The notes under the pieces are model-generated. The model searched no databases and was not told where the DNA came from. It worked only from the letters and a program-made list of their open reading frames with translations. From Selaginella moellendorffii (taxonomy: Eukaryota; Plantae; Lycopodiophyta): a DNA stretch of 64,000 bases. A program made the translations under genes and the position numbers. Location of the stretch: assembly GCF_000143415.4 (NCBI RefSeq), contig NW_003314306.1, forward strand, positions 463,698-527,697, in the 5' to 3' direction. Shown one piece after another: positions 2,129-53,600 of the stretch. Numbering within the stretch: position 1 is the first letter of the stretch; each line of letters begins with the position of its first letter.

Positions 2129-3977
2129 CTATAGCCTGGAGACATTAACTTTGATACCATTCACCATTGCTAACACCATGAGCAGCCTGTAGTGGACAAC
2201 GTGATCCTTCACTAGCTCAAAGTTAAAGAACCTCATGAGCATCGCGGCAGTGATCTTGGCCTGCAAGTAAGCGGCATCCTTTCCCAAGCAAATTCTCGGC
2301 CCGGCCTGGTAGAGTTTTCAAGTTTTAGCCGTGATGAACTAGAGATAAAGAGAGATCTCTCATACCTGGAATGCGGTGTAGACGAATGGTGATTGAGGCT
2401 GGTATTCGGAGTTTTTAATCCACCTCTCCGGCTTAAACTCTAGAGCGTCAGGTCCCCACAGAAACTCCATTCTTCCCATGGAGTATTGCACGTAAGCCAC
2501 AGAATCCCCACGTTTAACTTTAGTCCCGTCCGGAAGAACATCATCGTTGGCTGCATACTTTCCATCCTGGAGAAAGCTCAAGTTAGTCAGCTTTTTACTG
2601 GTGTAAAGAAAGCTTGGTGGGACTTACTCGTGGTACCGGCGGGTATAAACGAAGAGTCTCGCTGATGCACGCGTGCAAGTAGTGAAGCGTGCGAAGATTC
2701 TCAGTGGAGAGGAGCTGTGCGAAGGCACTGAAAGTCAGTGTGTTGCTCTCACTCCCAAAGGTCCGGTCTAACTCGAGGCGAATCTCTTTGGCCACTCGAG
2801 GATTGTTGCAAATGCAGTAGATAAACCAGGACAAAGTGATGGCCGTCGTGTCTCGTCCAGCAATTATGAAGTTGAGGATGGCGTCACGAAGCTCTCTGTC
2901 TTGATACGCATCGCTTGCTCCAGTGGAAGTCATGAATCGGGACAAGAGGTCCTGCCTTTCCTGGAAGACAAAACTGTAAGAAAAAGTCGTATTTGGGAGG
3001 AAAAAACTTACGTATTCCTTGCCAGATTTCTCGCAGGCTTCAATCTCTCGTCGTCGGTTTTCGATCACCTGGAACGTGAATGAGTCCAGTACCTGGATCT
3101 GGTTCTTTAGCTCCCGCTCAGAGCCCAGGTTGAGAGCTCGTAGGATTTTCCACACTGGCCCGATTAAGCGACGCACGATCAGCTCGTTAACTCGGTCAAA
3201 AGAAGCTGCGAAGGGAACTGCTGGTAAGGAAGGTGACAGAGTGTTTAGTTCCACTCCAAACGCAACCTCGCAGATAGAATCTAATGTCATTCGCATGGAT
3301 ATGTCCTGCCAAAGAAAAAAAATATTTCGAGCTTGAGATTGAAATGCTATTTCTCTCATAGACCATACCTGGAAGTCGAAAGAGGTTTTCGTGCTTGCAA
3401 TATTTTCCAACACTTCCATCATTCTCACAGCAGCCTTCTTGAAAACTTGGCCACTGTACTCGTTCACCTTCTTGGACGAAAATTCGTAGCTTGCAAGTTT
3501 GCGGTGCCGTTTCCACATCTCCCCGTCCGAATTGAAGATTCCATCTCCCATAAAGTCGTAGTTCCTGGCGCGCGAGACACGTCCCTACTCACCATACCGC
3601 AAGTAAGAACTTGAATCAGTAAAAACGAATCATACCTTGGGATAGTTAGCAAAATTTGTCTTGAGAATGTGCTCGACGTTGGCAGGGTCGATCGTGAGAA
3701 TGTTGTAGAAGGTCCCCCAGTCCACTGCAATCGTCCTACACTCGCTGCTGAAATAGCTAAGGAACCAGTCGTGAAGCACTGGGAAGTTCTTCACGACTTG
3801 GAAGTAAGAACCGACCAGAGGCCATCTCTTTGGTCCCTTGTGATTTCTTTTCTCCGCAGAAAGAAGCACCGCGAGGAAGACCGCAGCAGCAATTCCTGTG
3901 ATGAAAACCAGAGGATTTGGATAGGAAAGACCTTCGAAAACGCCGCTGATGTTACGAACTTTGTCGGTGGAGTTCAT
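2129..3977 (-). CDS. CYP704: Cytochrome P450, CYP86 clan, CYP704-like fatty acid omega-hydroxylase
   Basis: N-terminal TM anchor, [38 protein letters not shown]-helix [20 protein letters not shown] and heme motif [10 protein letters not shown]. Stop at 2129-2131. Confidence 0.9.
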
Positions 3978-31839: not shown

Positions 31840-34800
31840 TTCCCCAAAAACAGAATGACCAATGACCCCTGTCTGTGCAAATAATAAAGTGTATTTAGGT
31901 CATTGTTAGTTTTAATCTGTTATCATGTAATAGAAAATCTATACAGGGTAATTTAAATTTATAGTGGGAGAGCTCCTTGCATAATTCTTGAAGAGAATTT
32001 CTATGCAAGAATGTAAGAACTTAAAAGAGTTTCATGGACAGGGATATGCTCTTTGATCTTGTGCACAACACTTGAAAGGAGAACTCACATACCTGGATGC
32101 TCACAGTAAATTTGTCTGTATCACACAGCTCCCTCTTGGTCAGGAGTTGTAACTAGGAATTCCTCCATAGAATGGACTTCCACTTCCTCTAGAGCTGAAG
32201 CTTTAAAGCAACATAGCCATTTCAGTTTATCAGGTAGAACCTTAAAGTTCATGGTTCGCTGTGTGACCTTTGGAGCTGGACTTGGACAGCCCTGCATTGC
32301 TTACAGTTGACTTAGCAAGCTTTAGAATGCAATGCTGCACTGTATCAGAAACAGATCCTCTCATCGGTCTAGATTCCCTCCCTGTGTAAATTTGGGGCAT
32401 CTCGACCAAGAGATCAAATGTGTCTACCAAATGTGTCCGATCAGCCCATGGTGAGCAGTAGACTGAAAGAGACGAATTCTCGGCGGGAGAGATTGCCATT
32501 AGGAAGGATGATGCCAAAGCTTTAATTAAATTGTTTTCGCGCGGAAGAACAGAAAAACATTGGAATATCTTGCAACGATCAACATTTCAAACTCCTTGGC
32601 TATAGTGCCTGCCCAACGCCCTGGAACTTCCTAGAAAGCATGGAGCTTTCTAGAATATAAGTCCAGGCCCTAGCCCCACCTCTCGCAATCGTTTCCCTTT
32701 TGCCAGTAGCTCTCATCACCACACTACTGGTTTAGCTTATGGGTGAGAGCTACATGGCTCATAGTTATGCTCTTGGGACTGATTGTGTGGCCGTTTTGTT
32801 GTCTTGCACAGGTGGTGAGTTTCGTGAATGCCACTGCCATCACCAACATCTCCAACGAACGTCGTGATGCGCACTGGGATCGGTCGTCAATGCTATATCA
32901 GATCAGTCTCTATCAGGAAAAGCATAGTGGAGCATATCGTCGCTAGGCAAGAAAATGGATGGACGCAGCTCCAGTGGATCTGAGGGCAATAGCGCTATTG
33001 CCCTCAGATTCACTGGAGCTGTTCACCTCGGTTTTCTTGCCTAGCGACCGATCCGATCAAGACTCTGATGTGACATTGGCGACCCATCCCGGTGCGCACC
33101 TCTCTGCTGTTTGCGAGCAACCAAAGCAGCAGCAACGTCCCAAGGGGCCACCAGCATGATGGAGATGTCGAGTGCCGCTTGTTCATCCTTTGCTTCATTT
33201 TGGAATAGAACTCCCCATTGAGATTTTTCTTCTGCTTTGGCTTTGATCTTGAAACTTCTGCACACTATGTAACTCGAGGAATGCGCGTTCAAGAATCGAC
33301 ACATTTCTATCTCATGATTCTCTTGTAGAACACTTCCATTCTGTAGCGCAGCTCGGAAGGATGCCAATAGCACAAAGAAAGAACACAAGAGGACACGAAC
33401 AGAGCTTTTCTGCCCGTCTTACAAGCAACAAGCTGGCGAAAACAGTGAGGTACTTCAAAACTCTAATGCTCAAGCTTTTCATGAGAGTTTTGTGATTATT
33501 TCAGTGAACAGGCTAACTCGCTACGCCATGGAGTTCATGACAGCCTCCTTCATGCGCTTCCCAAAACACTTGCTCGATATTCTTTCGAGTCATGCCACTC
33601 TCTTGAGCGATTCCAGAAGTTGAGACGTGAGGCTATGTTCGCCCCAGTCTCACATGTAAGATGTCTGAGGTGACGAATTCCTTTTGGCAAATTGCTTGTT
33701 CTTTAGAACTATGTTTTTTCTTTGGTTGATTGAGAAGAATGAGGGAACGAACCTAGGGACACGTGATCCGCATAGATTGGCGTGAACGTCGCCGGATCAT
33801 AGTTCATCCTCTTCTGTCTACAGCACTGAGTGACAAGGTGCCACAGATTCCTAACCACAGATTCGAAGTTGCTATTGCCACCATCTCCAGGTTCTCCGGG
33901 ACAGCAAACATCAGCACAGGCTTGCGCCTTTGCCGGGTTCCGGATGCATGCTCATTTGAGGAAGCTCAAATGGTGGTCGAATGAAGCCTTGACTCACATT
34001 GCGTTTCCTTCTATGTGATTTTTCTACACGTTTTTCATGTCCCCGCGACGAGACGCGACGCCCATGAACAGCCCCCCAGTTGCGTATTATGTTGTTCCCA
34101 TCCTTTTACCTTACCCTGTAAGTTCAGCCCCCAAAAATGCAGTGAAGGAAGCTGTCGTTGATTACCAGAAATTTGGACAAGCTATCGAAAATGCGGAAGA
34201 TTGCAGAGATGAGAAACGACGTGATGGGACGCCTTATACCTTGAAGATACTTCTCTTGCAATCTTCGTTTGCATATAGTGTTGTGATTCACAGCAGCGGA
34301 GGCGATTACTACGCCTCATCCGGCCCACTCTTTTTGGCAAAACTCTCAGGCGGAATGATCGCCTTTCTTCCTTCCAAACATTAGGCCACACTTGGCAATG
34401 ATCCCGTTCGTCCCACGTTTTGGGAGGCCAATGCGATGATCATCAGGACGCTGCGCCGCGGCATCCTGATGCATTGCGTACATTTGCATTAGAAAGTTTT
34501 AGAAAAAAAATGCTGCGCTGCGGCATCTCCGGAAACAGTTCGTGGCATGGAAACTGATCGCAGTTATACAAGAGATCATCGGCCAAATCCTCTCTGAGCC
34601 TATGATCAGCCCCCCCTATGCTCGAAGTTTTCTTAACTTGTTTTCGCGCGCGAATTATAGATGAGATCTGGGCCGTCCGTTTGAAGATCCCTTGGAATAT
34701 TTTGCAACGAATTCAAACTCCTCTTCTCGGCATTGGTTTCTTGTCGCTCCATTTTGCATTAATTCCCGCCCTTGTTAAGAGCCCAGGCCTTGTGCTCAAA

Positions 34801-34996
34801 ACGCGAGCATAGTTTCCCTTCAGCGCTCTCTCGTTTCACCGCACATACGGTAAACCACCGCAGCTAAGAGGAACCTCAATGGGGAATCCTTGAAGAAAAA
34901 GCAACACCTCGGCAAACATAGTGTCATTGTTGGATGAAACTGCTGAGCTTATTTCAAATATGCTAGAACCAAGTTCCAACTCCATTTGCCAGGGAG

Positions 34997-36830: not shown

Positions 36831-37631
36831 ATGGCATCGCGCATGGCGGGTCGGGCATTTGGGCGGCGCATTCTCCAGGCGGCGCCGTCGGCGTCGCGGC
36901 GGTCGGCGCCATTTGGATTCGCGGGCGCCGCGCCTCGCAATCCAGTAAGATCCAGGTAAATCCCTTTGTGGGTGTCACAGATTCTTGCTTCTTTGTGATC
37001 CCGAATCTCTCCTCTTTTGCGAATTCTCTTGTCCAGCCACTTTACGAGTACATTCGTTATTCTTCTCTCCTCCTCTTTGCAAATTCTCTTGTCCAGCCAC
37101 TTTGCGAGTTACATTCGTTATTCTTCTGTCCTCCTCGTTGCAAATTCTCTCGTCCAGCCACTTCGCGAGTTACATTCTAGTTGCCATTCCCTTCTCTTTT
37201 TGCTCAAACTTTGCAAGGTTTTCTAGCTTTCTCGTGTGCTGCCGCAAGCTTTCTAAGTTACCTTGCTTAGAGTTTTCTCTTCTGGCAGCTTCCCGATTAG
37301 CTTGCGAAGTATCGTGACGATTTATCTTTGCTGTTGCCTCTTTGGAGATCAAAGTCTCTTGTGTGCTCTTCCACTGCGAAGTTACATTAGAGTTTTCTCT
37401 TGTTGGTATGAATGACTATTACACACGTCGTTGCTCTCTCAAGTGGCAACTTTGAGAGCCTGTGACAAATCTCGATCTCTGCCTGGCAGGATCTTCCGGC
37501 GGGAGCTTCTGTCGATGCGGCCGCTCCACAGCGCGACGGCCGACTGCTGGATGGTGTCGCGGATCTCGGGCTGCGCAACCTGCTATGAAGGTGATCTCAG
37601 CTGTCTCTTGGTTCGTTCTCGGATATGGTAG
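36831..37631 (+). CDS. NFD6/NOXY2-like small organellar protein, copy 4 (more diverged)
   Basis: Exon 1 (36831-36955) MASRMAGRAFGRRILQ...; exon 2 RIFRRELLSMRPLHSATADCWMVSRISG...W*. AAACCCTA teloboxes lie upstream. Confidence 0.72.
37008..37180. repeat. ~60 bp tandem repeat x3 in intron
   Basis: CTCCTCTTTGCAAATTCTCTTGTCCAGCCACTTTGCGAGTTACATTCGTTATTCTT-like unit repeated three times. Confidence 0.85.
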
Positions 37632-37913
37632 AAACTGTTGCCATCACTTTAATATCAAAGGTGGGTGTTTCAGGCATCTATCTCAAGTGGTTGACGATGT
37701 GCCTCGAGAATTCGCAGTCGGTGGCAACAACATGATCAAGTGAAAGAAACCAAGACGAGAAATACCTCCTGTGGTGCCAGCTTTGCCTGGACTTGTCATC
37801 AGTTTAGTTATCTTGTTCTCATGCTTGTTCTCAAGAACTATCTGCAATTATTCAAGTGCACACATTTTTCTCCTTCGTGTTAAACGGAAATTTCTAAGTA
37901 CCTTGCTTTGCTG

Positions 37914-40900
37914 CTACCATCGGTTGCCAAACTGTCCATCCCACTCTCGAAGCTGGTCGAGGTATCCAGCGTTATAAGATAAATTAACCTGCGGAGGATT
38001 GTCAAAAAAACGCTTGACAACAACACTTGACATATAGAAGCATACCTCCTCCAGAGTACTCACGAAGTCCTGTGTTGTAAGTGGCCTTAGTTCTTGAGGC
38101 AGTGGCTGTCCAAAAGCATTTCTTTTGGCCTGAAAACGAGGATGAGTTCACGAAACAGTAAATTGAAATTGGAAGCAAGTCATTTACTTTCTCTAACTCC
38201 AGCATTTCTCGAACAGGCCGATACGCTGCAGCCACAGTTAAGTTCTGAAAGGAAGCAATAAACGTTATGAATCACAAACAACTTAAGAGTGACACCTTCA
38301 AGTCATTTGCGCTATAGCCATCAGTTAATTCTGCTACTCCTTTAAAGTCGAAGCCATTCTCAATCTCCTCCTTGGCAAGCAGCACAACAAGGATTTTTTC
38401 ACGGCTTGATAAATCTGGAAGATCCACGCACAATCTGCCATCAGAGAGATGAGCAACAATGTCGTTTTACTATTGAAAGTAGACCTTTTCGGGAACTTTT
38501 GAATGACTGATTCGTCCAAATGGAAGGGTCGGCATGTAGCTGCCATCACCACAACTGGCTCTGCTATTCCTGACATGAGCCGATCCCATCCATAGATAAA
38601 CTCGAACTTGAACCTCGTCATTGCTTCTCCAGCTTGTATGGCGAAAATACTGTCGATCTGATGACAGCGCTTACAAGAATAGAACAAAAATGAAAGTGAA
38701 ATGCACCTCATCGAGAAAAATAATTGATGGAGCCAGCCTGCGTGCAATTGAAAACCAGGGCTCTGGTCATCCGCTTCGGATCCTCAAGCCACTGCACCAC
38801 AGAAGCTTCAGTGCCAAACTCACAACCTCTATTAAGGGTACCTTGTACTCAATAGAATTGCCTCTAAGCCAAAATAAGTTCGCGGAAGACTGGGCTGCAA
38901 CGGCCTTTGTCAAGTAAGTCTTCCCAGTACCAGGCGGTCCATATAAAAGTACACCTTTGCAAGGCTATCCAGGCGTCAGAGACACAAAGGTCGTAAGCTT
39001 TCAAGACTTACACATGCCAACGCTCCCTTGGCAAAATGTTCTGGTCTCAGGAGGGGCACCACAACATGCTCTCCAAGAATTTTCTTCACATCCTCAAGTG
39101 CACCAACGTCATCAAATTTCGGTGTGCCGTTTGGCGCCAATATTGTAGACAACACAGCTTCTTCGAACTCGTCTTTTGCTACTAGCTGTCAAACAAAATT
39201 AAAAGCAGTCAAATTTGATACAAGCAAATACCTTAGGACCTTGCGCATGCTTGAGCCGTCTCAGCTTGAGAAGCGCTCTATCCAAGCTGCAAACCTGCAT
39301 TATCGATCTGATTAAACAGCACAATCTTCCACGTACCTGCCTGCCGAAAGAGAAGTTTTGGCAGTCGATTTGTCTACGTGAATATTCTGTGAGTTTGAAT
39401 ATTCGTAGCTCACTGCCCAACTTACAACGTACTCGGCCTCTGTAGTAACTTCAGTTCCTCAGCGTTCCTTCCAAAGAAGAATCGGCTTACCCGAGTATGT
39501 GAGAAGGAAGTCACATATTTGAAACTCCATAAATTCCAAACACACCAGGTTGTGGGACGTCAGAACCTGAAGAAACACTTAACAAATAAAAAATGAATGG
39601 AAAAATAGAAACCTGAACCTTCTGTAATAGTTGGATATTCTTATTCGCAGTAACACGCTCACCGTCTTGCAAAAGAAGCGCTTTCCATCTCCAGAAGTCT
39701 AGATCATCCTATGAGCTGCCAGAATCAGCTCAAGCCTAAACAGTCGTGTAAACGATACCTTTGGAGGAAAAATATCGACCACATTGGCGAATAAGTTATG
39801 TATACTCTTCAAGCTCTTCCTTTTAACCTGAAAAAAGCTGTCAAATGACAACGAGTGACAATTATAACTAGTTACCACAGAAAGAGGCTCATCTGCATCG
39901 GAAGTGAAGGTGGCAATAAGAGCGACGTTTCCAATCACTTTGTCCAATTGCCTTTGTAAATTGTCAATGATCTCCTGCTTCCAAGCTACAGGGACTGCTC
40001 TTTCAAACCATTGCTCAAGTTCCGGGAAGTACACAATCAAAGGCTTAGCGCTTCTACTTATCTGTAAAAATAAGATGAAAAAAAATCCAAGCATAAAAGA
40101 CAGGATACCTCGCACAAAGCGCTGATAGTGGCTTGCCATGCTGCAAGGAACATTGTATTTCCAGATTGATCCTTGTCAAAATCAGACGCTAAAGCAAGGC
40201 TGTTAACATATTCTCGGTAAAGTAAAAAAACGAGCTTACCATAATGCCATTCAATGGGAGGACTTCTTCGAATGTCCTCGAACCTTGTTGTTAACTTGAG
40301 TGCGTCCTCCGTCGCATCAAAGAGGATCCCAATCTTTCCAGAAACACTTTCAGAGACGGCAATGACTCGACCTCTACAATCAGTCTCAACAAATAAGTAA
40401 ATAAATATCGTAAAACTGAAAAACGCTACCTTTGCCTTTCGTCCCTTTTGCTTACGACACGATCACCTGAAAGCAGCATCTATGTCATTTAGGCAAATTG
40501 TAAAAGCTCTTACCTTTCCTGAACCCATATTTGAAGCCCGTCACCTTCAATGGTGTACCACATGTTCAGTAGAATACAGAGGCAGTATTACAAACTGTTA
40601 CCTTCGACATATCATCATCTGCTTCAACTGCATCAGTATAACCATCACCGTGATCCTGAAAGGAACACAAATTCTCGTAAGTCAAATGGACTGATAACAA
40701 AACAAAAATACACGAGAAACGAAGATGGATGGACATACAAGTTCTGGCAAGGAACCAGAACCTCAAGCACATACTTGAGGAGCAAGATCTGTACTATCGA
40801 GCATTAGTAACGCTACGCCTTGATCATGAGCAATTGCTTTCACCAGCATTTCCTGGTACATTTCCGAATCTTTCACACAAAAAGTCAGAGAGTTCGTTTT

Positions 40901-41418
40901 CACTTTGGCATTGAGGCTTACTTTGTGGACCATTCAGCAAGATCGTATTGCTGGAGGCACAAAGGCCGGACAAGTGACTCGCTCGTCTAGATTGATCGAG
41001 GCACGATCCCAGCGCCTCAACTAGGAAATCCCGAGTGACATCACTGGACACAATTTGCAACAGTTAGCATACCAGCAACGCGAAATAAGATTATATACCT
41101 CAGGTAATATGGAAACTTCGTCAAAGAAGCGTTGATTCTCTCGGCGGGCTGTATTTTCTCCACGAAATACTTCTTCAGTGACAGCTTCAAACCTGTCCCG
41201 ACCGCTTTTCTATACTCGAAAGCTTCCCTTGCGACAGTCACGTCTCTCTCGAGCCGTTCCCGTTCCTGCTGTGCCTCGCACAACGCCTTGGATGCCAAGT
41301 CCACTTTCCGTTCGGCCTCGCAGAGATCCTTGCATTTAAGTTCCTCCCTCCGCCTCTCGAAATCTAGCAAGTCATCAAACTCGTCACCATCCTGCTGAGC
41401 ACCAAGAGCTCCATCCAC
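37914..41418 (-). pseudogene. Plant long-form MSP1/ATAD1-like AAA+ ATPase (At1g50140/At3g19740-like) with a single +1 frameshift
   Basis: About 18 exons give FPYYLSDVTRDFL, ILLNGPQNSEMYQEMLVKAIAH, PLIVYFPELEQWFERAVP, FDDVGALEDVK, Walker A GPPGTGKT and Walker B IIFLDE. Exon 38791-38707 is 85 nt (one extra G at ~38755). Stop at 37914. Confidence 0.85.
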
Positions 41419-41479
41419 CTGAAAAAACGCAAACATTATATGGCAGAAAACGGCAAAAAAAAAAAAAAACCAAACTTAC

Positions 41480-42332
41480 AGGTCCATTCCTGAATCCCAC
41501 GCATCCGTCTTGAGACCGCATAAGCAACTTAGCACGCTTCTTATCAACTTTAGCAAGCTCAGCCAGCCTGCGCTGCCAGTCGACGTTCCTCTCCCTCTCC
41601 ACCTCTTTGAGCAAATCTCCATATCCATCACCGGCCGCGACACCCACGCCCGAATCCCGTTTCCTCTTGGTCGCCCTCGTCATCTTCTTCCCAGAGCCCA
41701 GCCGTGGACTCAAGCCAGCAGCATTCGAGAACTCCTGGTAGCTGCTCGTCTCCGCCGCTTGGCCCGCCACCACGTTTGAGTTCTCACTCGGCGAAGCGTC
41801 CAGGCCAGTCTCCCCAGGACCCTCGAGAAGAAGAGTGTGACCACCTCTTCCAAAAGAGTTCCCGGACTGTGGCGACGTAGTAGGCAAGCTCGCGGCCGGA
41901 ATGTTGAAGATCAAGTCGCCACCATTGTCGAGAACCACGACGTCCTCCTCGTCACTCCCCTCGGTATCCTCTCCACAGCCATCGCCCACGGCGGGCTGTC
42001 CAGAGATGGGCGAAGCTCCCGCGGCGGAGAGCTTGGTGGTGTTGCCAAAGAGCTTGTTCATCACCACGTAAAACTCCCAGGGAGAGGTGTGGCCAGTGGG
42101 AGCGTACTTCATCCTCTCGCGCTTGTAGCGCTTCTTGAGGTTGTCCACCTTGGTCCGGCATTGCTGCTCGTTCATGCTGATGCCACAGAACTCGTTCACC
42201 TTGTTGGAGACCTCGGTCCACTGCGCCATGGTGAGATTGCCCATGTTGCTCTTGGTCCACACGTCCTTGAAGCACTCGAGCAGCATGATCGCGTGCATAA
42301 AAGGCCAGGAATCTCGGTTGGCCTTGCGCTTG

Positions 42333-42371
<39 letters not shown>

Positions 42372-42827
42372 TGGCACTGTGATTGCTGCTGCTGCTGGGG
42401 ATGGCTGGAATCGCCATTGGCGGCATTGCTCATCCCTGGCGAGAAAAATCACACTGTGAGCTCCGCACAGATCGATAGAATTGACAATCCCGAGGATAAT
42501 TCTTAAAATCTAGCTGACAGGGATGGAAGAAACAAGAAATCTCAGGCGCTTGGATCGAGATGAAAATCTAGGCGAGAGAGGAAACGAAAGATTTTTGAAA
42601 ATCTAGCCGAGAAATCTCTGGAATCTAGGCTCTTGGATCGAGATAGAAATCTAGGCGAGAGAGGAACCGAAAGATTTTCGAAAATCTAGCCGAGAGAGGG
42701 AATGTCTAGCGCCGCGCATTCGCAGAAGCGCACATTTCTCACCTGACATCGATGCCGCCCCCGCCGCTGCCGCCGCCTCGCCCTTGCGCGCCCGGGCGGC
42801 AGCATCCAGGCTAACGTTTAGATCCAT
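41480..42827 (-). CDS. Trihelix (Myb/SANT-like) transcription-factor exons, apparently spliced in frame to the AAA ATPase
   Basis: Exon 1 MDLNVSLDAAA... (ATG 42827). Exon 2 has polyQ, W..LLECFKDVW...QWTEVS...QCRTKVDNLKKRYKRE...PWEFY..M and a C-terminal coiled coil. Donor at 41479. Confidence 0.85.
42335..42397 (-). repeat. CAG trinucleotide (polyQ) tract
   Basis: (CTG)n on the + strand encodes QQQQQSQCQQQQQQQQQQQQQ. Confidence 0.95.
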
Positions 42828-42879
42828 CCCCTTTTAGGGCTCTTCAAATTGGAGAGAGAATTTAGGGTTCTTGGGCTCA

Positions 42880-43469
42880 ATGGCAGGGAGGGGGGGCAAA
42901 GCGCAGGAAGGCGGCAAGCGCAAGCGCGGAATGTTTAGCAAAGAATGTAAGCATGGAATTTCTCATCTCTTTCGGTTTCTTTGGATCGATCGATCGCTCG
43001 CGCTTTTGCAGTGAGGCTCATGATGTATGGATTTGGAGACGATATTTGTGTAAGCTCGCTTTCTTGTTCTAGTTTCTCTCTAAGCTCGTCTTAAAAGACT
43101 CCTACAGCCTCTTCAAGAATCGGTAGCTCTTATGGAGGACATGATGATCGAATATATCACTGATATGGTGTGCTTCGTTTTTTTCTTCTTACCTTTGCTA
43201 ACTAGAATTTTTTCCAGGTTCACAAGGCTCAAGAAGTATCCTCGAAGAGAGGAAAGCTCACAACAGAAGACGTGATGTTTCTCGTCCGCAAGGTAACGAT
43301 TTAATCTTTGTTTAGCGAAATGGTCATCGAGCTTCTATTATTCCAGGACATCCGCAAGTATGCCCGTGTGAAAGAGCTCTTGTCCATGAACGAGGAACTA
43401 AAACGTGCCAGGAAAGTTCTAAACGAGGACCTGGACGAGCAAAAGCTTGCCGCGCTAGAAACCCAGTGA
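42880..43469 (+). CDS. TAF13: Transcription initiation factor TFIID subunit 13
   Basis: Five exons give KRKRGMFSKELRLMMYGFGDD..PLQESVALMEDMMIEYITDMVHKAQ...RGKLTTEDVMFLVRKDIRKYARVKELLSMNEELKRARK. Confidence 0.95.
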
Positions 43470-43955
43470 AGAAGGCGACGCTAGCTCGTCGACAAGTAGC
43501 AGTAATTTATGCGGTAAGTAGCATACGTCCAGCGAAGAAGACAGTGACAAAAGTAAAAGCAATTCAAGCTTGACATAGATAGGTAGATGAATCCGGGTGA
43601 TTCATACAGACGGGGATATAGATTGGTCGACCGATCCGGATGGTTGGTTCATACAGGTGTTCAAAAAGATCACTCCTTTTGGTCATCTTCGTGGGAAGCA
43701 GTAGGGATGGCCAGGTTATGACAGGAATCTGTCATTACAGCACGGTGGAGGAGATGCCACCATTCGAATCCGTGCTTCGGATATCCTTCAAGACAAAAAG
43801 AGCCGACACGAGTTTCACGGAAAACTCGTACTGAGAGTCCGAGGCGGCGTCTTTCGTGTGAGAGGCAAGGCAACTTATAAGTAGCAGCAGCAGCAGCAGC
43901 AGAAAGCAGCAGCAGCGGTTTCATTCTTCTTTCGCTTGTGTGTGACTTCTTTGTC

Positions 43956-46352: not shown

Positions 46353-48139
46353 GGACGAGAAATTTCACCCCCGGATTCTTCACAACCGCATGAAGGCACT
46401 AAACCCTAGAGTACCTCGATCGATCGATCGCCTGCCTCGCGCGTGCTAGAATTCCAGGCGCGCACGAGCATCCCTAGAAACGCGAGCCCTCGCGCGCACG
46501 CACGCGTTTCTTGCGCCGCCGTGCGTACGCCCTAAAAGACAGAGAGACCATTAAATTAGTTAATTTAATTGTAATGTGATTAGATTTTATAAATTCTAAC
46601 GTAACAGTTTAACTTAATGGTAATTTGTTCAGACGAGAAATTACCATTAAATTAGCTTAATGATAAAATTAGCATTTTCTTTGTATTTTTCCTTAAAATC
46701 CTAATGTTACACTTTTCTAGCATTAAAAGTAAGACTTTTCTTTAGGGCTTTAGCACACATGTGGTAGAGTTCCCTATTTAATTTCTTCCTTATCTCAGAC
46801 TGTGCAAAATGATGCTAAGATCAAAAAGAGCATGATCTTGCCAATGTGCCAATCAATCAATTGCTAAGCTCTCAAGCTGTGCAATCAATCAATCTATGTG
46901 CTACTAGAGTTTTGAGGGATTGATAATTAATCAATTGCACTCAATCGTTACAATCACTAGTTTAAGGGGAAAGAGATAGAGTATGTTATATGTGGTATTA
47001 GAGTAAATGGCATGGGTTCAATTTCTATTATTTAATGGCTACTTAAAAATATAATATACTTCTAAGTAAAGTATATTCCTACTCCTAAATTTGAAATCAT
47101 ACATATGAGGCATCGATACATATGCCTTTCCTATTATGGAGCATCTATGGATAAAGTTAAGAAATATACTCTAAAATTTGAAATTATATATATTGAGTAT
47201 CCATACATATGTCTTTTCTCTTTTGGAGCATCCATAAATGGAGGTAGGACTATAGTATAGGTAAATTATTAGTTGACTCACTTGAAATAACTAATCTATA
47301 CAATGGAAGGATTAATAAATTTAGTGTGGAAATGACCCCTATCTTAGTAGGGGTTATTAATTAATAATATACCTCTTACAATATAAAGGTTATATTAGAT
47401 AATTTATAAAATAACTAGTCTATACAATAGAAGGATTGATAGATTCCCTTTGGCTCAATAGTGGTTATTAATCACTATCCATAGCTCAATATCAAAAGCT
47501 TAGTTATGTGGATAGTTTATAAATTTGAGAAATTATGGATTTTTCTTTTATCGTTAGAGAATTTTAGAAAGTCCCAAATCTATGTTGGTATGTTAGGATT
47601 GCATTAGATGTGGCAATGGATACCTATAGTGCCCATTAGATTTTAAGGAATATCCTTCAAGTTTTTTATAAGGATCTGTAGGAATATTTGATTTCATGTG
47701 CATAATATACATTTTTATTTATAGAATATTCAATTTCACATATAAAATATTCTTTTAAAACTAATATGTGATGCCACATGGAATGTTTTACATGCAATAT
47801 GAACTTTTTTCACATAGCACCAATTTACAAATAATATGCTATAGAGTGTGGCTAGTGTTCTCTTTGATGGAGCAAGTGGCAGTACAATTTTAGAGGTCAG
47901 GCAAAACCAATAGGCCATAGTAGCTATCAAATGGAGTTTCTATGGATGCTCATGGCATAGATGGCATGGATATTATTGCATAGTGCCTAATCTACATCCT
48001 AGGCAAATGTGTGAGAGAGTATAGAGAGGAGGGGAATTGCAAGTGTGGCTTCTAGAGCACCATCTGTTTTTTTTCTTTATATCTTTGAGGATATATTATA
48101 TATCTATTCAAGAGAGGGAACTTTGTGATGGGAATTTTC

Positions 48140-50295
48140 CTATGGTCTACTTCTTCACTATGTGACTGCATCTTTGGTCATTACATTAGAGGATTGCTCC
48201 TTTTCCTTCCACCATCCAAGACTTTAGGACAACATTTTGGAACACTGTGGCCTTACACGAGCCTCATGGTCACTCTCCCCACTTTCCTCCTTTGGGTGCT
48301 TTAGCCATGGGGCTAGAGTGAGGTTCCGTTGAGCCACACTAGGTATCAAAATAAGTAATGCCACCCACGCTTGAACTGGGAGCATTGATTATTTAATCTC
48401 CTAGGAGGAATTAGAGTTAGCTCTTGAACACTCACTAAACTACCTTATTTGTTAGCACGTATTCACTCTAACCTTGGACTTCCCAATGGTTATTTCATCA
48501 CCCAACACTTGGGTACAACCTTCCTGGGCCAAATTAGCCTTTCCTAGCCAAACTAGCTCCATTAGGGTCTAACCCCCATACTCTCCCTACTATACCCCAT
48601 CTAAGGGACGATTGTTTTGGGCTTTCATCCAACAACCTGTATTAGTATTCGGACTTGAACTTAGACTTGGACTTGGACTCAGACTCAAACTTGGTCTCGG
48701 TCCCGGTTTTGGACTCGGACTTAGTCTCGGTCTCAGTCTCAGTTCCATCTCGAATTCCATTTCAGACTCCATTTTGGGTCCATCTCAGGTTTCATCTCGG
48801 GTCCATCTCAGACTTCAGCTCATGTCCATCTCAAACTCCATCTCAAATCCATCTCAGACTCTATCTCGAACTCCATCTCGGGTCTATCTTGAACTCCATT
48901 TTAGACTCTTCCATGTGTCATGTGTTGGTCCTTTTGTGTCCCCTTTTCTAGAGACTCATTTGTTTCTCATTTCATGCTCTATCCTCAAGCATTTTATTGA
49001 GAGGTCCACTCTTGCTCTTGACCGTTCGAGTCGGAGCTTTTTAATCCAAGTATGTTACACTTTTTTGGCTTCTGCCTCAGCCACTAACATATGGCACCCT
49101 TTTGGCTCCACTTTGGGGCTTAGGGATTTGTGTTTCACAACTTCACCACCCATAAATAAAATTTGATGTCCTCGTTGAACAATAAACCATTTTATAAAGT
49201 AACACCAGCATATATTACCCTTTTCATCTTTGGCACCTAGCTAATATTTATCAATAGTCTGACACTGAAGGCTCACCATACCTTGTCCATCCTCTAAGGA
49301 GTATAATCTCTCCAATTTAGAAACTCATTAAACCATTTATAGTAGTCCTTCTCTTTTTGTTTATTTAGTTCATGCTAAACGTGTTAGAGATACTGTCTCT
49401 ATTTTAATTTGAATACTCATTCAGGAATAGCCTCAACCTCTACCAACATAACTTTTGCACTTTGGAACTTTTAATTTTGACTTTTCAAATTTAATTCTCT
49501 AGGTGTCTCTAACACCTGACATTGCATGTGTTGTGCAAACTCAGCTTCCCTATCTTAAAAAGTTCTTTATTTGAGGGCACCATCATCCTCTAATCTATTT
49601 GGTGCCACTTTATGCACTAAGTTTCATTTTTCTATAATTTGTGTTAAAGTTGTCCACGGCCCTATCATTTGGCTACCTTGCCCTCCTTCCCTTAGAGCTT
49701 TTGCTTCGCTAAATTGGAGTATTTAGGAATCCATTCTTGGAAATATATTTCCTTTTCCACAATCTATTAGCACTAAACACATGAGTGTTCCTTGCCTAAC
49801 CTTTCCATTTAGATTCCTTCTAATGATTTCTATAGCCCATTCTTATCCCTTAGTTTTCTACTCTTATCCTTTGATTGTTGCACCAAGCAACATAGGATCA
49901 CTCCCTCCATCCTCGAGGTATCTTTTTAGTTCCATAGCAAATATTTTGTTTTGCCAAGTCCAAATGGTGTTCACCCCTAATAAATCTCTTTAGCATTTTC
50001 TGTTGTGGGCTCTATCCACAGCCCTACTTTGTGACCATCCCATGGATCTCTCCTAAAAACACATTTCTTTGGACTCACTATGCCATTGCATTGACATAAC
50101 TCATTTCCCTTTGGTATTCTTCCCACTTGGTCACTTTGACTAAACCATACCATTATTAACAGTTCAAATAAACACTTTAAACTAAGAACTTTATTCCTTA
50201 ACCTCACAAAGACATTATCCTTGCTCACCTAGTGATTTAGCCTTGACACCTTAACAGATTTACTAATCGGTACTAAGTCTTTCAGACTTTTAACT
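48140..50295 (-). mobile_element. Degenerate LTR-retrotransposon internal (gag-like) region, copy 1
   Basis: 48149-49088 is homologous to 53599-54357. It contains 6/12-bp (GGACTT / ACTCCATCTCGG) repeats, is CpG-depleted and has many stops. Confidence 0.6.
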
Positions 50296-50691
50296 TGTTG
50301 ACCATGACCCTGGGGGCATCCCCACACTTGGCAGTGCACCCAAGTTAGCCCTTCCGACCAAGGGTCCATAGCAACTAAGATTGAATGTCCCCATCTCATT
50401 CACCACGTCCTTGGTGCCACTTGCACCAAAGTTGTTCAAGTTAGATATATTGAGCTTTCACATTAAGCAATCTAGCCGTATTACGACTCCAGGGCATCCC
50501 CTATTTGGCGGTGTGCCCAAGCCAATCTCCTTACTGAGAGTCTATAACCACCAAAAAATGAATGTCCTTATATTCCAACCCATCACTATGCCCTAGTGCA
50601 TTAGGACTTGAACCCAAGCACTAAAGGGTTGGGACTCAAACCCAACCTCCATATATGCATTTATAGACGGCATCACCCAAGATGCCTAGCA
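50296..50691 (-). mobile_element. Putative LTR of the minus-strand gypsy-like element
   Basis: On the minus strand a PPT-like GGGGGAG precedes TG..., a TATA (TCTATAAAT) follows, and the segment ends ...CAACA. Confidence 0.4.
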
Positions 50692-53600
50692 TGACTCCCC
50701 ACACTAGTGCACTAATTTATACTTAAAGTGCATTACAAATCACAGCTTAGGAACTTAGTTTCTCCGTATTGCTAAATCTTTTCACTTAATAAGTTTGTGA
50801 TCATGCATAGATTCCTCTATGTTTGGCCCTATGGGCTACCCCTTTTGAAGTTAATACCATCAACTAAGGTATTTGTTCCCTCGAATTGCCAATATCGCTT
50901 AGCAAGTCATCTGACCACCGTAATATGGTTCATGCATAAGTGTGAAAGTCCTTAACCATCAATTTTCATTCAAAGTTATCCCTTTGAACACTCAGGAATT
51001 ACTTCCCCAATCTTAGTAGCCTTGCATTATAGCAAGTTTCAAGACCACGCTTCTACTGTGCCACTCCAATTTCACGTGTTCTATGAACCATTTACACTTC
51101 GTTTTTTAGGTACTAAGCTACCTAGAATTGTCTATGGGAACCTTGAAGGAACTCTATCCTTTAGCTTGTTAATGTTTCTCCTTTCACAAACTTTCTAATT
51201 GCCATATAATCTAACATGGACAATTTCGCCAATTATAACATACTTGAGCACCCATTTGATTCTTCATTCCCAACTCACATAACCACCTTTAGTTATGCCC
51301 TTCGATTTTTATAGTTCAGTTTTATCCCTTTATTACTTACTTTTTGGCCTCATACATTTCCTTCAGTTATTCTCCTCTAAACTAGAAGGATAGTTTTGCA
51401 TTTTCTACCATGCTTTAGCAAATCTTCTTAAGGATGAATCTACCTAATAGCTTAGGGAGTGGTTCCTCAATTCGGGTATGCTCACCTTGTAATTTCACAC
51501 ACTGGGATTAATGTGTAAGCAACCAAAAGGAACAATTCAAGAGACAATCTATAGAAGTTTAAATATAGAGGGAAAGGGCCCATGAATAAGAGTGCACCCC
51601 CTTTTCCAATCGGTTAAGGGTCTTGGGATATTTGGGGTTAAGCATCCTTGGGTTTGAATAGTACTGGGTTGGGTGACTTCTCAGGAAGTCTAAATTCAGG
51701 AGTTTATATTTGGTATTAGAGGGGTCTCGGACTCTGTTGGTTGGCTAAGGGAATCACACCATATATTAATTGACATCTAGCAGGTCCAATTTACTCCTAC
51801 TGGGCTCGACTCGGGGGGTAGAGTGTCAAGAGAGCGAGGCTCTCAAGAAAGTTGCGGTTCTCAACTTCTGTTCACGAGGGCATGAACTTGTAGGGAAGCA
51901 TGGTGGGTTGTAAGCAACAAAAGGGAACAATTTGCACCCCTTTTTCCAATCGGTTAAGAGTTTTGGGATATTTAGGGTTAAGCGTCCTTGAGTTTGAATA
52001 ATACTGCGCTGGGTGACCTCCTGAGAAGTCCAAATTTAGGAGCTTACATAATGTTGCTACTTATGGGCCTTTATATGCTTATCACTAGCCTTGATCCCTT
52101 TTTGGGTTTGTCCAATTCGGATATATAAACTTCTCCCATCTTTCCAACTTTAAACATTTGGATAGCATTTATTATCCATCATTTGCTAAGGATTTAGTCC
52201 CTTAGGCCTTATCTACTGCCCTCATAACATTAAACACCACTTCCTAGTATTTTAGAATGTTTGAATGTCCCAATGATAGCCTTCTTTAATAATGAGCATT
52301 CCCTTTACGATATTGATTAATTATATTGCAATATAAATAATTTATCCCTCATAAAGGTATATTTAACTTTCTTATCCCAATAAGAAGTTTTGGGTAGTTA
52401 CCTTCTACCAATTTAATCAATTATTTTGCACCTTTTACTTAGTTGCTTAATAGTTGTCAAGTCCTATAACTCATTGTTGTTGCCTCCACACCTTTATCAT
52501 TATTTGAGTCACCACACTCCAATTATATGCCCTCCAATTTAGGCTATACCATTTCCATTTCCATTAGAATTTCTTTGGGAAGGGGTTCTCATGAATCTGC
52601 CAACTTGACCTCAAGGCATCATGCCTTGGCACATTTTGTGTCTCTACACTATCGGCTCCACGAGCCTAACTTTATGACACTTCTTACTTATGTTTAGATC
52701 TTTGCTAAAACAAATATAGTTGTTTCTCATGCCAATTATTTGTTAGCACTGCATTATAGAGTTTACACACAACTTTGTGTTAAAGTTATTTTTTTTTGGA
52801 AACACCTTTCCCACGGCTTTAGTATGGCACATTTTGCCATCAATAAGATACCCACTACTATTATACTTGGATCTTATGATCCTCCCCATCCTTCGTGAGG
52901 CACAATACATCTCAGTCCAAATGTTTTTACCAATCCCTTAGAACCATTCCTTAACTCTACTTGAGTTATTCAGCTTTTTGCACTTTGTTAATCCGATAAC
53001 TCGTAAGCTTCTACTTTTGAGATGCCAACTTACTGGAATACAACTTTTTGTATTCATGTCCTACTCATAAGGACCTTCACTGTAAGTGTTACTCCAACAC
53101 TTAATTATTTTCCATTTCCTGTGGGCTACCTTTGCCTCTTAGAACTATCTGTTTATATGATGAAAATACTAATTCATCCTCTAAACACACCCCCAACTCT
53201 TTAGGTTTGTTCCAGCATTTATAAAAGGTAGCCCTGGCTACCATTTCAAAGACTTGTGTTCTTATATGTATTCAGTCATTAATTCTGGTCTCAAATTCAT
53301 TAGCCTCAACTATATATGGATAATTTTATGACTCCTTTATTGTTTTGGAGTTTTTATCTTTCTCGTGATCCTAATTATAGTTGTTTACCACAACTATATT
53401 AGCTAGTTTACTAAATTAAATGCTCATCTAGATCACATCCTCAACATTCTTAGGATGCCCACAGACATAGAGAATAACCTTCCCCAATATCCCTTTTTCG
53501 GTCCTCACTAAATCCCTTTCTATCCATGGTTGTGTTTGTCAACACTGCCACTGGATCAAGGCCCATAGGCCTAACCACTAAGTCCTCTTGTTCTCTGGAA

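Follow-up and report, generated by a model that had tools for sequence, protein, structure and literature searches.

A trihelix-type DNA-binding module spliced in frame onto a diverged AAA ATPase duplicate in Selaginella moellendorffii

Does a stretch of lycophyte DNA that encodes a trihelix-type DNA-binding domain immediately ahead of an AAA+ ATPase hold two genes or one? The question is raised by a locus on the minus strand of a 64,000-nt window of Selaginella moellendorffii (the whole stretch analysed: contig NW_003314306.1, positions 463,698 to 527,697; coordinates below are those of the window). A preliminary description had read it as a trihelix factor fused in frame to an MSP1/ATAD1-type AAA+ ATPase. 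It was taken as either a lineage-specific fusion yielding a DNA-targeted scaffold or remodeller, or an AAA duplicate that had captured the promoter and exons of a trihelix gene. The locus is now confirmed as a true in-frame chimeric gene that is expressed as a single spliced mRNA. The gene model is already in RefSeq (LOC9638407), but it is unnamed and undiscussed. To our knowledge, few chimeric genes couple a sequence-specific DNA-binding domain to an AAA+ motor. The present gene is a clear natural example: its two parent families can be identified, one phase-0 intron forms the junction, and the remodelling of the motor half is evident.

The gene runs from 42827 to 37914 in 24 coding exons, whose GT-AG sites were checked against joints in RNA contigs (Table 1). 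Exon 2, which carries the trihelix domain, ends with the codons AGG AAT GGA CCT (RNGP) directly before a GTAAGT donor, the last coding base being 41480, and exon 3 opens at 41418 with GTG GAT GGA GCT (VDGALGAQQ). The 61-nt intron between them (41479-41419) is T-rich, ends in CAG and joins the two exons in phase 0, exactly as had been claimed from the sequence and now also as seen in RNA. The AAA part comprises 22 exons (exons 3-24) rather than the approximately 18 counted before; its full frame is found in the other haplotype, although the copy in the window is frameshifted and is in that respect not complete. Exons 3 and 4 contain no Met codon, and the AAA part has neither a separate 5' exon nor promoter space. 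The plus-strand open reading frame (ORF) upstream of the fusion gene matches the Pfam TFIID-18kDa family. Because exons 3 and 4 are Met-free and this TAF13-like gene lies head-to-head upstream, the AAA part is without a start or a promoter of its own, in agreement with the preliminary description.

Transcription across the junction is seen in several independent data sets. A search for sequencing runs gave 20 runs from 10 studies, each with about 40-55% of the 31-mers of the stretch and with assemblies of 20-60 Mb. Their records merely guess 'RNA', and they are regarded as transcriptomes because this 31-mer share approximates the exonic share and because of the size of the assemblies. Contigs of four independent studies (runs X1, X2, X3 and X7) were mapped to the gene, and in all four exon 2 is spliced to exon 3 (41481 to 41418), which provides the junction-spanning RNA that had been named as the check on the fusion. 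The 3786-nt record 11 of X7 contains window positions 41481-42316 at record positions 45-880 and 41099-41418 at 882-1201. Its AAA exons can be followed at least as far as 38296 (record position 3026), and the approximately 760 nt of contig beyond this would reach the 3' end of the gene. The junction is also bridged by record 9 of X3, record 3 of X1 and record 7 of X2. Transcripts ending after the trihelix exon had been considered the observation that would speak against a fusion; in none of the four runs does a contig cover the 61-nt intron, and the bin that holds it loses depth in every run by exactly the share of the intron. At least 15 other GT-AG introns are likewise removed at precise joints in each of the four runs. 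Mean word depths lie in the same range over the trihelix and AAA contigs of each run, although a depth that is flat for each contig cannot rank parts of the gene. Since a removed intron that joins both halves cannot come from two separate transcripts, the halves belong to a single transcription unit. Two others of the 20 runs, X16 and X17, are labelled as other organisms (B and C) and contain about 40% of the 31-mers of the stretch, as do S. moellendorffii transcriptomes, which points to mislabelling, to contamination or to a very close relative as the source; X19 and X20 are probably DNA runs.

RefSeq models the same architecture on scaffold GL377597.1 as 'uncharacterized protein LOC9638407', with two entries, XP_024537501.1 (P0151, 1129 aa) and XP_024537502.1 (P0001, 1128 aa). 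Their protein cluster has a third member, the 310-aa partial GenBank model SELMODRAFT_106157, and S. moellendorffii's own transcript contigs are not among its members. An exhaustive HMMER search with exon 2 gives one strong match, P0001, which is 99% identical over residues 30-342. The RefSeq locus (L001) has the same neighbours as the window, including the TFIID-18kDa (TAF13-like) gene, head-to-head and 53 bp away. Because L001 and the window are 97.3% identical over 11.7 kb, the window is the other haplotype. Outside this block (window 32200-34900 and 47500-51900), haplotype identity is 85-94% with many indels, and divergence is thus uneven around the locus. The comparison with the other haplotype that had been proposed earlier shows the same architecture, with all 23 coding introns GT-AG in both haplotypes and all 46 splice-site dinucleotides conserved. 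The fusion intron of L001 (11327-11383 of that locus) is 57 nt long versus 61 nt in the window, owing to variation in the length of a T-run. It contains no in-frame stop, so that even unspliced RNA of this allele would encode the fusion. The polyglutamine (polyQ) tract noticed earlier is encoded by a CAG array, with a 12-nt length difference between the haplotypes. A literature search found no paper naming LOC9638407, its accessions or a trihelix-AAA fusion.

The domain of the trihelix half matches Pfam Myb_DNA-bind_4 (PF13837), as had been proposed: the score is 47.8 bits (cut-off 27, E 1.9e-12), the match spans 88 of the 89 profile positions, and the domain of P0151 scores 43.2 bits. In an alignment of 30 sequences, W14, L22, W43 and E77 are invariant and G36, Q62, S88 and W90 nearly so, and the window protein keeps all of them; the Trp, Leu, Trp, Glu and Ser-x-Trp positions are those shared by plant trihelix proteins of the GT-1 type fold. 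An AlphaFold2 model of the domain has a predicted local distance difference test score (pLDDT) of 78, with helices at residues 16-32, 40-54, 60-81 and 93-100. No Foldseek match to this model reaches an E value of 0.001. The geometrically best one, at rank 2, is Arabidopsis GT-1 (2JMW), with a probability of 0.99, a root-mean-square deviation of 2.0 Å over 65 columns and a template-modelling score of 0.65 by target, at an E value of just 0.53. After P0001, the best HMMER matches of exon 2 are fern, liverwort and angiosperm Myb/SANT-like proteins of 140-435 aa that are 23-39% identical and align over the domain only. The nearest of these relatives are uncharacterised proteins with 27-37% identity in the domain alignment, and none contains an AAA domain. 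A close stand-alone relative was found neither by a word search of proteins of 174-555 aa nor by the exhaustive HMMER search, in which identity did not exceed 39%; the same two kinds of search gave no close S. moellendorffii paralog of this half. A stand-alone trihelix parent in Selaginella was sought and set aside, the word search being empty and the HMMER relatives at most 39% identical. An origin of the domain from a Myb-like gene of a PIF/Harbinger transposon was likewise considered; no transposase is found near two fern relatives, and the idea is unsupported. Loose contig ends at 41943, 42404 and 42755 had hinted at a paralog; they lie in low-complexity CAG, GAG and GCG stretches with little depth, and the contigs are taken as unrelated transcripts. 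The preliminary description had also called the N-terminal MDLNVSL a repressor motif of the ERF-associated amphiphilic repression (EAR) type. Judged by the consensus DLNxxP or LxLxL, residues 2-7 (DLNVSL) fit neither form, since position 6 lacks Pro and the residues follow L-x-V-x-L; this assignment is unsupported.

The AAA half belongs to a different family from the one first named. When residues 348-1129 of P0151 were used as a query, the matches were land-plant AAA proteins of about 1000 aa with a DUF7751 region, which show 34-39% identity over about 75% of the AAA part. Pfam AAA (PF00004) scores 92.5 bits against a cut-off of 21.2, and AAA_lid_3 is also above its cut-off. The DUF7751 profile (PF24933) finds no match at E<=0.01 in P0151, while the Diphasiastrum and Ceratodon members P0158 and P0156 score 32.8 and 28 bits; this region of the fusion still aligns with the family by BLASTP. 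The motif FPYYLS and a degenerate first P-loop, ILLNGPQNS (xLLxGPxGS in the family), align as well. The canonical S. moellendorffii paralog, LOC9643713 (P0280, 999 aa), is 55% identical to its Diphasiastrum ortholog and 38% identical to the fusion, and its homology to the fusion begins near fusion residue 420. AAA-family homology thus begins inside exon 3, at its last approximately 34 codons; the first approximately 72 codons of this exon have no detectable homolog. In a maximum-likelihood tree with two other long-AAA subfamilies, the fusion lies inside the DUF7751 clade of 15 sequences with a support of 100/100, on a terminal branch of 2.69 against a median of 0.26 (about 10 times) and 0.69 for the canonical paralog. 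The age of the AAA duplication is not fixed by this tree, because the place of the fusion inside the clade lacks resolution.

From FPYYLS onward, the fusion shares the layout of the uncharacterised long DUF7751 proteins (LOC9643713, Diphasiastrum P0158, Ceratodon P0155 and P0156), in which a degenerate AAA-like domain on the N-terminal side is followed by a middle region and then by a single canonical AAA core with its lid. Ahead of FPYYLS, the family has a basic, presequence-like N-terminus of about 160-280 aa, whereas the fusion has about 420 aa with the trihelix domain. Msp1/ATAD1 is a membrane-anchored extractase in which an N-terminal transmembrane anchor precedes a single AAA domain, with about 360-400 aa in total, while spastin and katanin are AAA proteins of the meiotic clade. 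Among the single-domain matches of a sequence search of the PDB, the best are spastin (181 bits), whose alignment extends to the very C-terminus, and Msp1 (6pdw, 178 bits). The two come out almost equal, which shows membership in the meiotic clade, as judged from sequence, and not orthology to Msp1. The fusion shares with the Msp1/spastin/katanin clade a pore-loop Trp and the typical C-terminal helix. Unlike Msp1/ATAD1, it is 1129-1133 aa long (three times longer), has an extra degenerate AAA-like domain and has no anchor: a hydropathy scan finds no N-terminal transmembrane segment, the maximal 19-residue Kyte-Doolittle average being 1.3, as compared with 2.0 at residue 6 in DAA1-like outgroup proteins. 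The earlier term 'MSP1/ATAD1-type' therefore holds as a clade-level likeness, while the true family is that of the long DUF7751 AAA proteins. The names 'ATAD1', 'MSP1', 'spastin' and 'katanin' attached to these proteins are automatic labels, and in a literature search with the identifiers of two putative Arabidopsis orthologs the canonical subfamily appears in gene lists only. Taken as a whole, the comparison supports the view that the AAA half arose by duplication within an AAA family that is normally separate, and that its original N-terminus was lost.

The ATPase core of this duplicate is altered. The fusion was aligned with 17 homologs from bryophytes to angiosperms, including members of the two other long-AAA subfamilies. 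All but one cover the region, the exception being a truncated Physcomitrium isoform in which the sequence following Walker B is missing up to and including the sensor-2 region. Walker A (GPPGTGKT) and the Asp-Glu of Walker B are invariant in the homologs and kept in the fusion, the latter as IIFLDE, and the lid and sensor-2 region are also kept. In contrast, the sensor-1 motif ATNRP and the Arg-finger motif RRLPRR, each found in 16 of the 16 covering homologs and in the alignment with VAT, read ATCRP and QKFPKR in the fusion. In pore loop 1, KWFGD/E of the family is KWLED, in which the Trp is kept and the Gly is replaced with Glu. The segment after Walker B is AIQA instead of GARG, the lid motif is SAND instead of SGSD, and the conserved C-terminal tail GEGGSRK..FGF of the family is absent. 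AAA rings use the sensor-1 Asn and trans-acting Arg fingers for ATP hydrolysis and the pore loop for gripping the threaded chain, and the extraction cycle needs the sensor-1 and Arg-finger residues that the fusion is without. Because Walker A and B are kept while sensor-1, the Arg fingers and the pore-loop Gly are lost, the AAA half probably binds nucleotide, whereas hydrolysis in trans and threading are not probable. An active 'remodeller', as first suggested, is thus doubtful in view of these replacements; the chimera, its lineage-specific nature, the AAA duplicate and the capture of the trihelix promoter and exons are the parts of that proposal that find support.

The copy in the window carries a difference that bears on whether the gene is intact. 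In exon 19, the window reads CCCTGGTTTT versus CCCTGTTTT in L001, with an extra G at 38755/6. With this G, the frame runs ...ALVFNCTQAGSINYFSR and then meets a stop 27 codons into exon 19, ahead of Walker B, so that 957 aa are encoded; when the G is left out, the frame continues as ...ALFSIARRLAPSIIFLDE, the same as RefSeq and the family, and the product has 1133 aa. The 1129-codon frame is intact in the other haplotype, and the extra G is missing from RNA contigs in four of four runs. The latter is weak evidence, because each contig bubble is resolved independently. Single-nucleotide polymorphism (SNP) alleles of both haplotypes are present among the transcript contigs; the window allele is thus unlikely to undergo strong nonsense-mediated decay, and the evidence leans to a base-calling error. 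On balance, a broken allele and a base-calling error are about equally probable.

Polymorphism between the haplotypes provides a view of selection on the gene. When the 27 coding SNPs are classified by codon with the extra G skipped, 14 are synonymous and 13 nonsynonymous, corresponding to a ratio of nonsynonymous to synonymous polymorphism (omega, pN/pS) of 0.27 (binomial P=0.0008 versus neutrality). Taken separately, the trihelix half gives 0.14 and the AAA half 0.36 (P=0.03 versus neutrality for the latter). The introns differ at 2.3% of positions, a figure that counts indel columns (35 in introns), versus 0.8% substitutions in exons. These values, although the counts are small, point to purifying selection on both halves, and the overall ratio argues against neutral decay.

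The fusion appears to be lineage-specific and has been found in one species only. No second trihelix+AAA protein was found in an exhaustive HMMER search and two word searches. PF13837 and PF00004 occur together in P0001 only among the 120 AAA-search matches listed, and in the long matches of the trihelix search the additional modules are repeats, zinc fingers or an amino-acid-kinase domain, and in no case AAA. The search for this architecture in other lineages that had been suggested earlier therefore yields S. moellendorffii alone, though this absence of orthologs is weak evidence because protein databases hold few lycophyte proteomes and because even S. moellendorffii's own transcript contigs are missing from the protein cluster of the fusion. 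Among the weaker matches of the trihelix search, P0150 and P0083 combine Myb_DNA-bind_4 with AA_kinase and represent an independent trihelix-enzyme fusion architecture. The trihelix-amino-acid-kinase fusion is widespread in plants (Arabidopsis At3g10030). With Myb_DNA-bind_4 at the N-terminus and an enzyme module joined to it in frame, these proteins set a precedent for the present fusion, although they differ from it in that the partner is an amino-acid kinase and not an AAA protein.

The best explanation, which we hold to be likely, is that LOC9638407 is a real and lineage-specific-looking chimeric gene, in which a captured AAA duplicate would act as an ATP-binding scaffold or switch. In the proposed scheme, an AAA duplicate would have landed downstream of a small trihelix gene and lost its own first exon or exons, and a GTAAGT donor just ahead of the trihelix stop would have begun to use an acceptor in the 5' region of the duplicate. 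One promoter, head-to-head with the TAF13-like gene and shared with it, drives the 24-exon mRNA, in which splicing places a Myb/SANT-like (trihelix) module of about 350 aa in frame with the diverged DUF7751 AAA duplicate. Canonical members have a basic N-terminus followed by a charged linker up to FPYYLS. Their first 50 aa contain 6-13 Lys or Arg and 0-4 Asp or Glu residues, versus 3 and 4 in the fusion, and this N-terminus looks like an organelle presequence. The replacement of about 420 aa in the fusion consists of exon 1, polyQ, the trihelix domain, an acidic stretch, the basic clusters RKRK and KRKR, and a charged, possibly coiled-coil stretch. The basic clusters, including KRKR, could be nuclear-localisation signals, and because of this resemblance the product is probably nuclear and DNA-bound. 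The AAA half would most likely be an ATP-binding, oligomerising scaffold or switch and not a processive unfoldase or extractase. A more specific extension, to which we give little credence, is that the fusion re-targets a normally organelle-directed AAA protein to chromatin as a hydrolysis-dead, DNA-tethered subunit, acting either as a multivalent clamp or repressor or as a poison or redirector of LOC9643713. As a clamp, an ATP-dependent oligomer would hold up to six trihelix domains on DNA in a nucleotide-gated manner; as a poison, it would co-assemble with the canonical paralog. Either form of re-targeting would represent a new route from an unfoldase scaffold to a transcription regulator.

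Several observations weigh against this explanation. The presequence reading of the canonical N-termini comes from composition alone, and nuclear localisation, DNA binding, oligomerisation and ATP binding are all deduced from sequence. The RNA status of the runs is only guessed in their records, though 23 precisely removed GT-AG introns leave little doubt about it, and no individual molecule can be followed from cap to poly(A) in contigs of short reads. No ortholog with the same architecture was found in the protein searches, so that long-term conservation gains no support. A truly frameshifted window allele may suggest that the gene is dispensable, and the very long branch together with the lost catalytic residues also fits a gene heading for decay. 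This last point leads to the view that the locus is a transcribed but functionally decaying chimera, that is, a recent accidental fusion that is still spliced and whose frame is open on at least one haplotype, but whose AAA half, and perhaps the protein as a whole, would have no selected function left and drift to a pseudogene. Such a course would agree with the tenfold branch, with the loss of sensor-1, Arg fingers, pore-loop Gly and C-terminal tail that are invariant in the 16 covering homologs, with the frameshift ahead of Walker B and with the want of a second example. It is nevertheless unlikely, since pN/pS is significantly below 1 overall and in the AAA half, neither the other haplotype nor the RNA contigs interrupt the frame of 1129 codons, none of the 46 splice-site dinucleotides has been lost in either haplotype, and the core still has its Walker A and B motifs, lid and sensor-2 region; moreover, SNP alleles of both haplotypes occur in transcripts, which speaks against strong decay of the mRNA of one allele.

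Conjoined or read-through transcription, in which stand-alone trihelix and AAA genes would be the norm and the fusion mRNA a minor by-product, is very improbable. In the window haplotype, the unspliced 61-nt intron would end the trihelix protein 33 codons on, at 41384, and contigs drop rare isoforms, so that a minor one could be missed. Yet the fusion intron is uncovered in all four runs with a bin depth as expected for full splicing, and contig depths are in the same range over both halves in each run, with one flat figure per contig. An independent AAA gene is further disfavoured by the Met-free exons 3 and 4, by the missing 5' exon and promoter space and by the start of family homology inside exon 3, while the stop-free 57-nt intron of L001 would let even unspliced RNA encode the fusion. 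A misjoining of two unrelated loci by assembly or annotation is practically negligible: nothing was found in its favour, apart from the extra G at 38755/6 that may be a base-level error, whereas the structure is shared by two independently assembled haplotypes that are 97.3% identical over 11.7 kb, and RNA contigs of four studies cross the exon junctions. As a chimeric gene with a captured AAA half, LOC9638407 offers a tractable view of the way in which exon capture may give rise to new regulators in a compact plant genome, and it shows the change of an enzyme domain after capture, with nucleotide binding kept and the residues for hydrolysis and threading lost. Its reach is limited, as it concerns one species, a RefSeq model already exists and function is a matter of inference.

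Table 1. Coordinates of features of the trihelix-AAA fusion gene in the window
Feature	Position	Strand	Remarks
Coding exon 1	42743..42827	-	ATG at 42827, MDLNVSL...SMS, ends in phase 1; identical in RefSeq P0151
Intron 1	42436..42742	-	307 nt, GT-AG; splice 42742/42434 in RNA contig X3 record 10
Exon 2	41480..42435	-	polyQ, Myb/SANT-like (trihelix) domain, acidic low-complexity stretch, basic clusters, charged stretch; ends RNGP
CAG (polyQ) array	42334..42397	-	Tandem Repeats Finder; 12 nt (4 Q) longer than in the other haplotype
Myb_DNA-bind_4 (trihelix-type) DNA-binding domain	42050..42313	-	Pfam, alignment, AlphaFold2 model
Fusion intron	41419..41479	-	61 nt, GT-AG, phase 0; spliced out in X1, X2, X3 and X7 contigs
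Exon 3	41099..41418	-	First ~72 codons charged, possibly coiled-coil; last ~34 codons LKLSLKKYF...FPYYL
Exons 4-16	39232..41043	-	Degenerate N-terminal AAA-like domain (ILLNGPQ replaces P-loop, as subfamily-wide) and middle region
Exon 10	40109-40188	-	RNA joint 40188/40240 in all four runs
Exon 16	39232-39286	-	Acceptor at 39286; contig-length arithmetic on X7 record 11 and RefSeq protein
Exons 17-20, AAA ATPase core	38485..39185	-	Pfam AAA, 92.5 bits
Walker A GPPGTGKT	38917..38940	-	Intact
1-nt insertion, GG versus G	38755..38756	-	Frameshift in exon 19
Walker B IIFLDE	38707..38724	-	Readable only in the frame without the extra G
Sensor-1 position (Cys, not Asn) through Arg-finger positions (Gln-Lys, not Arg-Arg)	38496..38534	-	Homolog alignment
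Exons 21-24, AAA lid and C-terminal helix	37914..38434	-	Stop TAG at 37914-37916
Intron of the 3' untranslated region (UTR)	37842..37901	-	60 nt, GT-AG; RNA contigs of all four runs

The TAF13-like (TFIID-18kDa) gene on the plus strand occupies 42871-43470, head-to-head with the fusion gene and about 100 bp from its ATG. One X3 transcript contig crosses the 5' ends of both genes, which suggests that their 5' UTRs overlap or that they share a bidirectional promoter. Intron 1 of the fusion gene is retained in lower-depth RNA contigs of X1 and X2. It contains an 83-nt tandem unit in 1.9 copies with a 92% match (42538-42695), and one X2 RNA contig lacks 10 nt at 42659. On the other side of the gene, about 650 bp downstream of the spliced 3' UTR, which is covered to about 37800, a 61-nt tandem repeat in 2.9 copies with a 92% match (37006-37177) creates several overlapping spurious ORFs on both strands.

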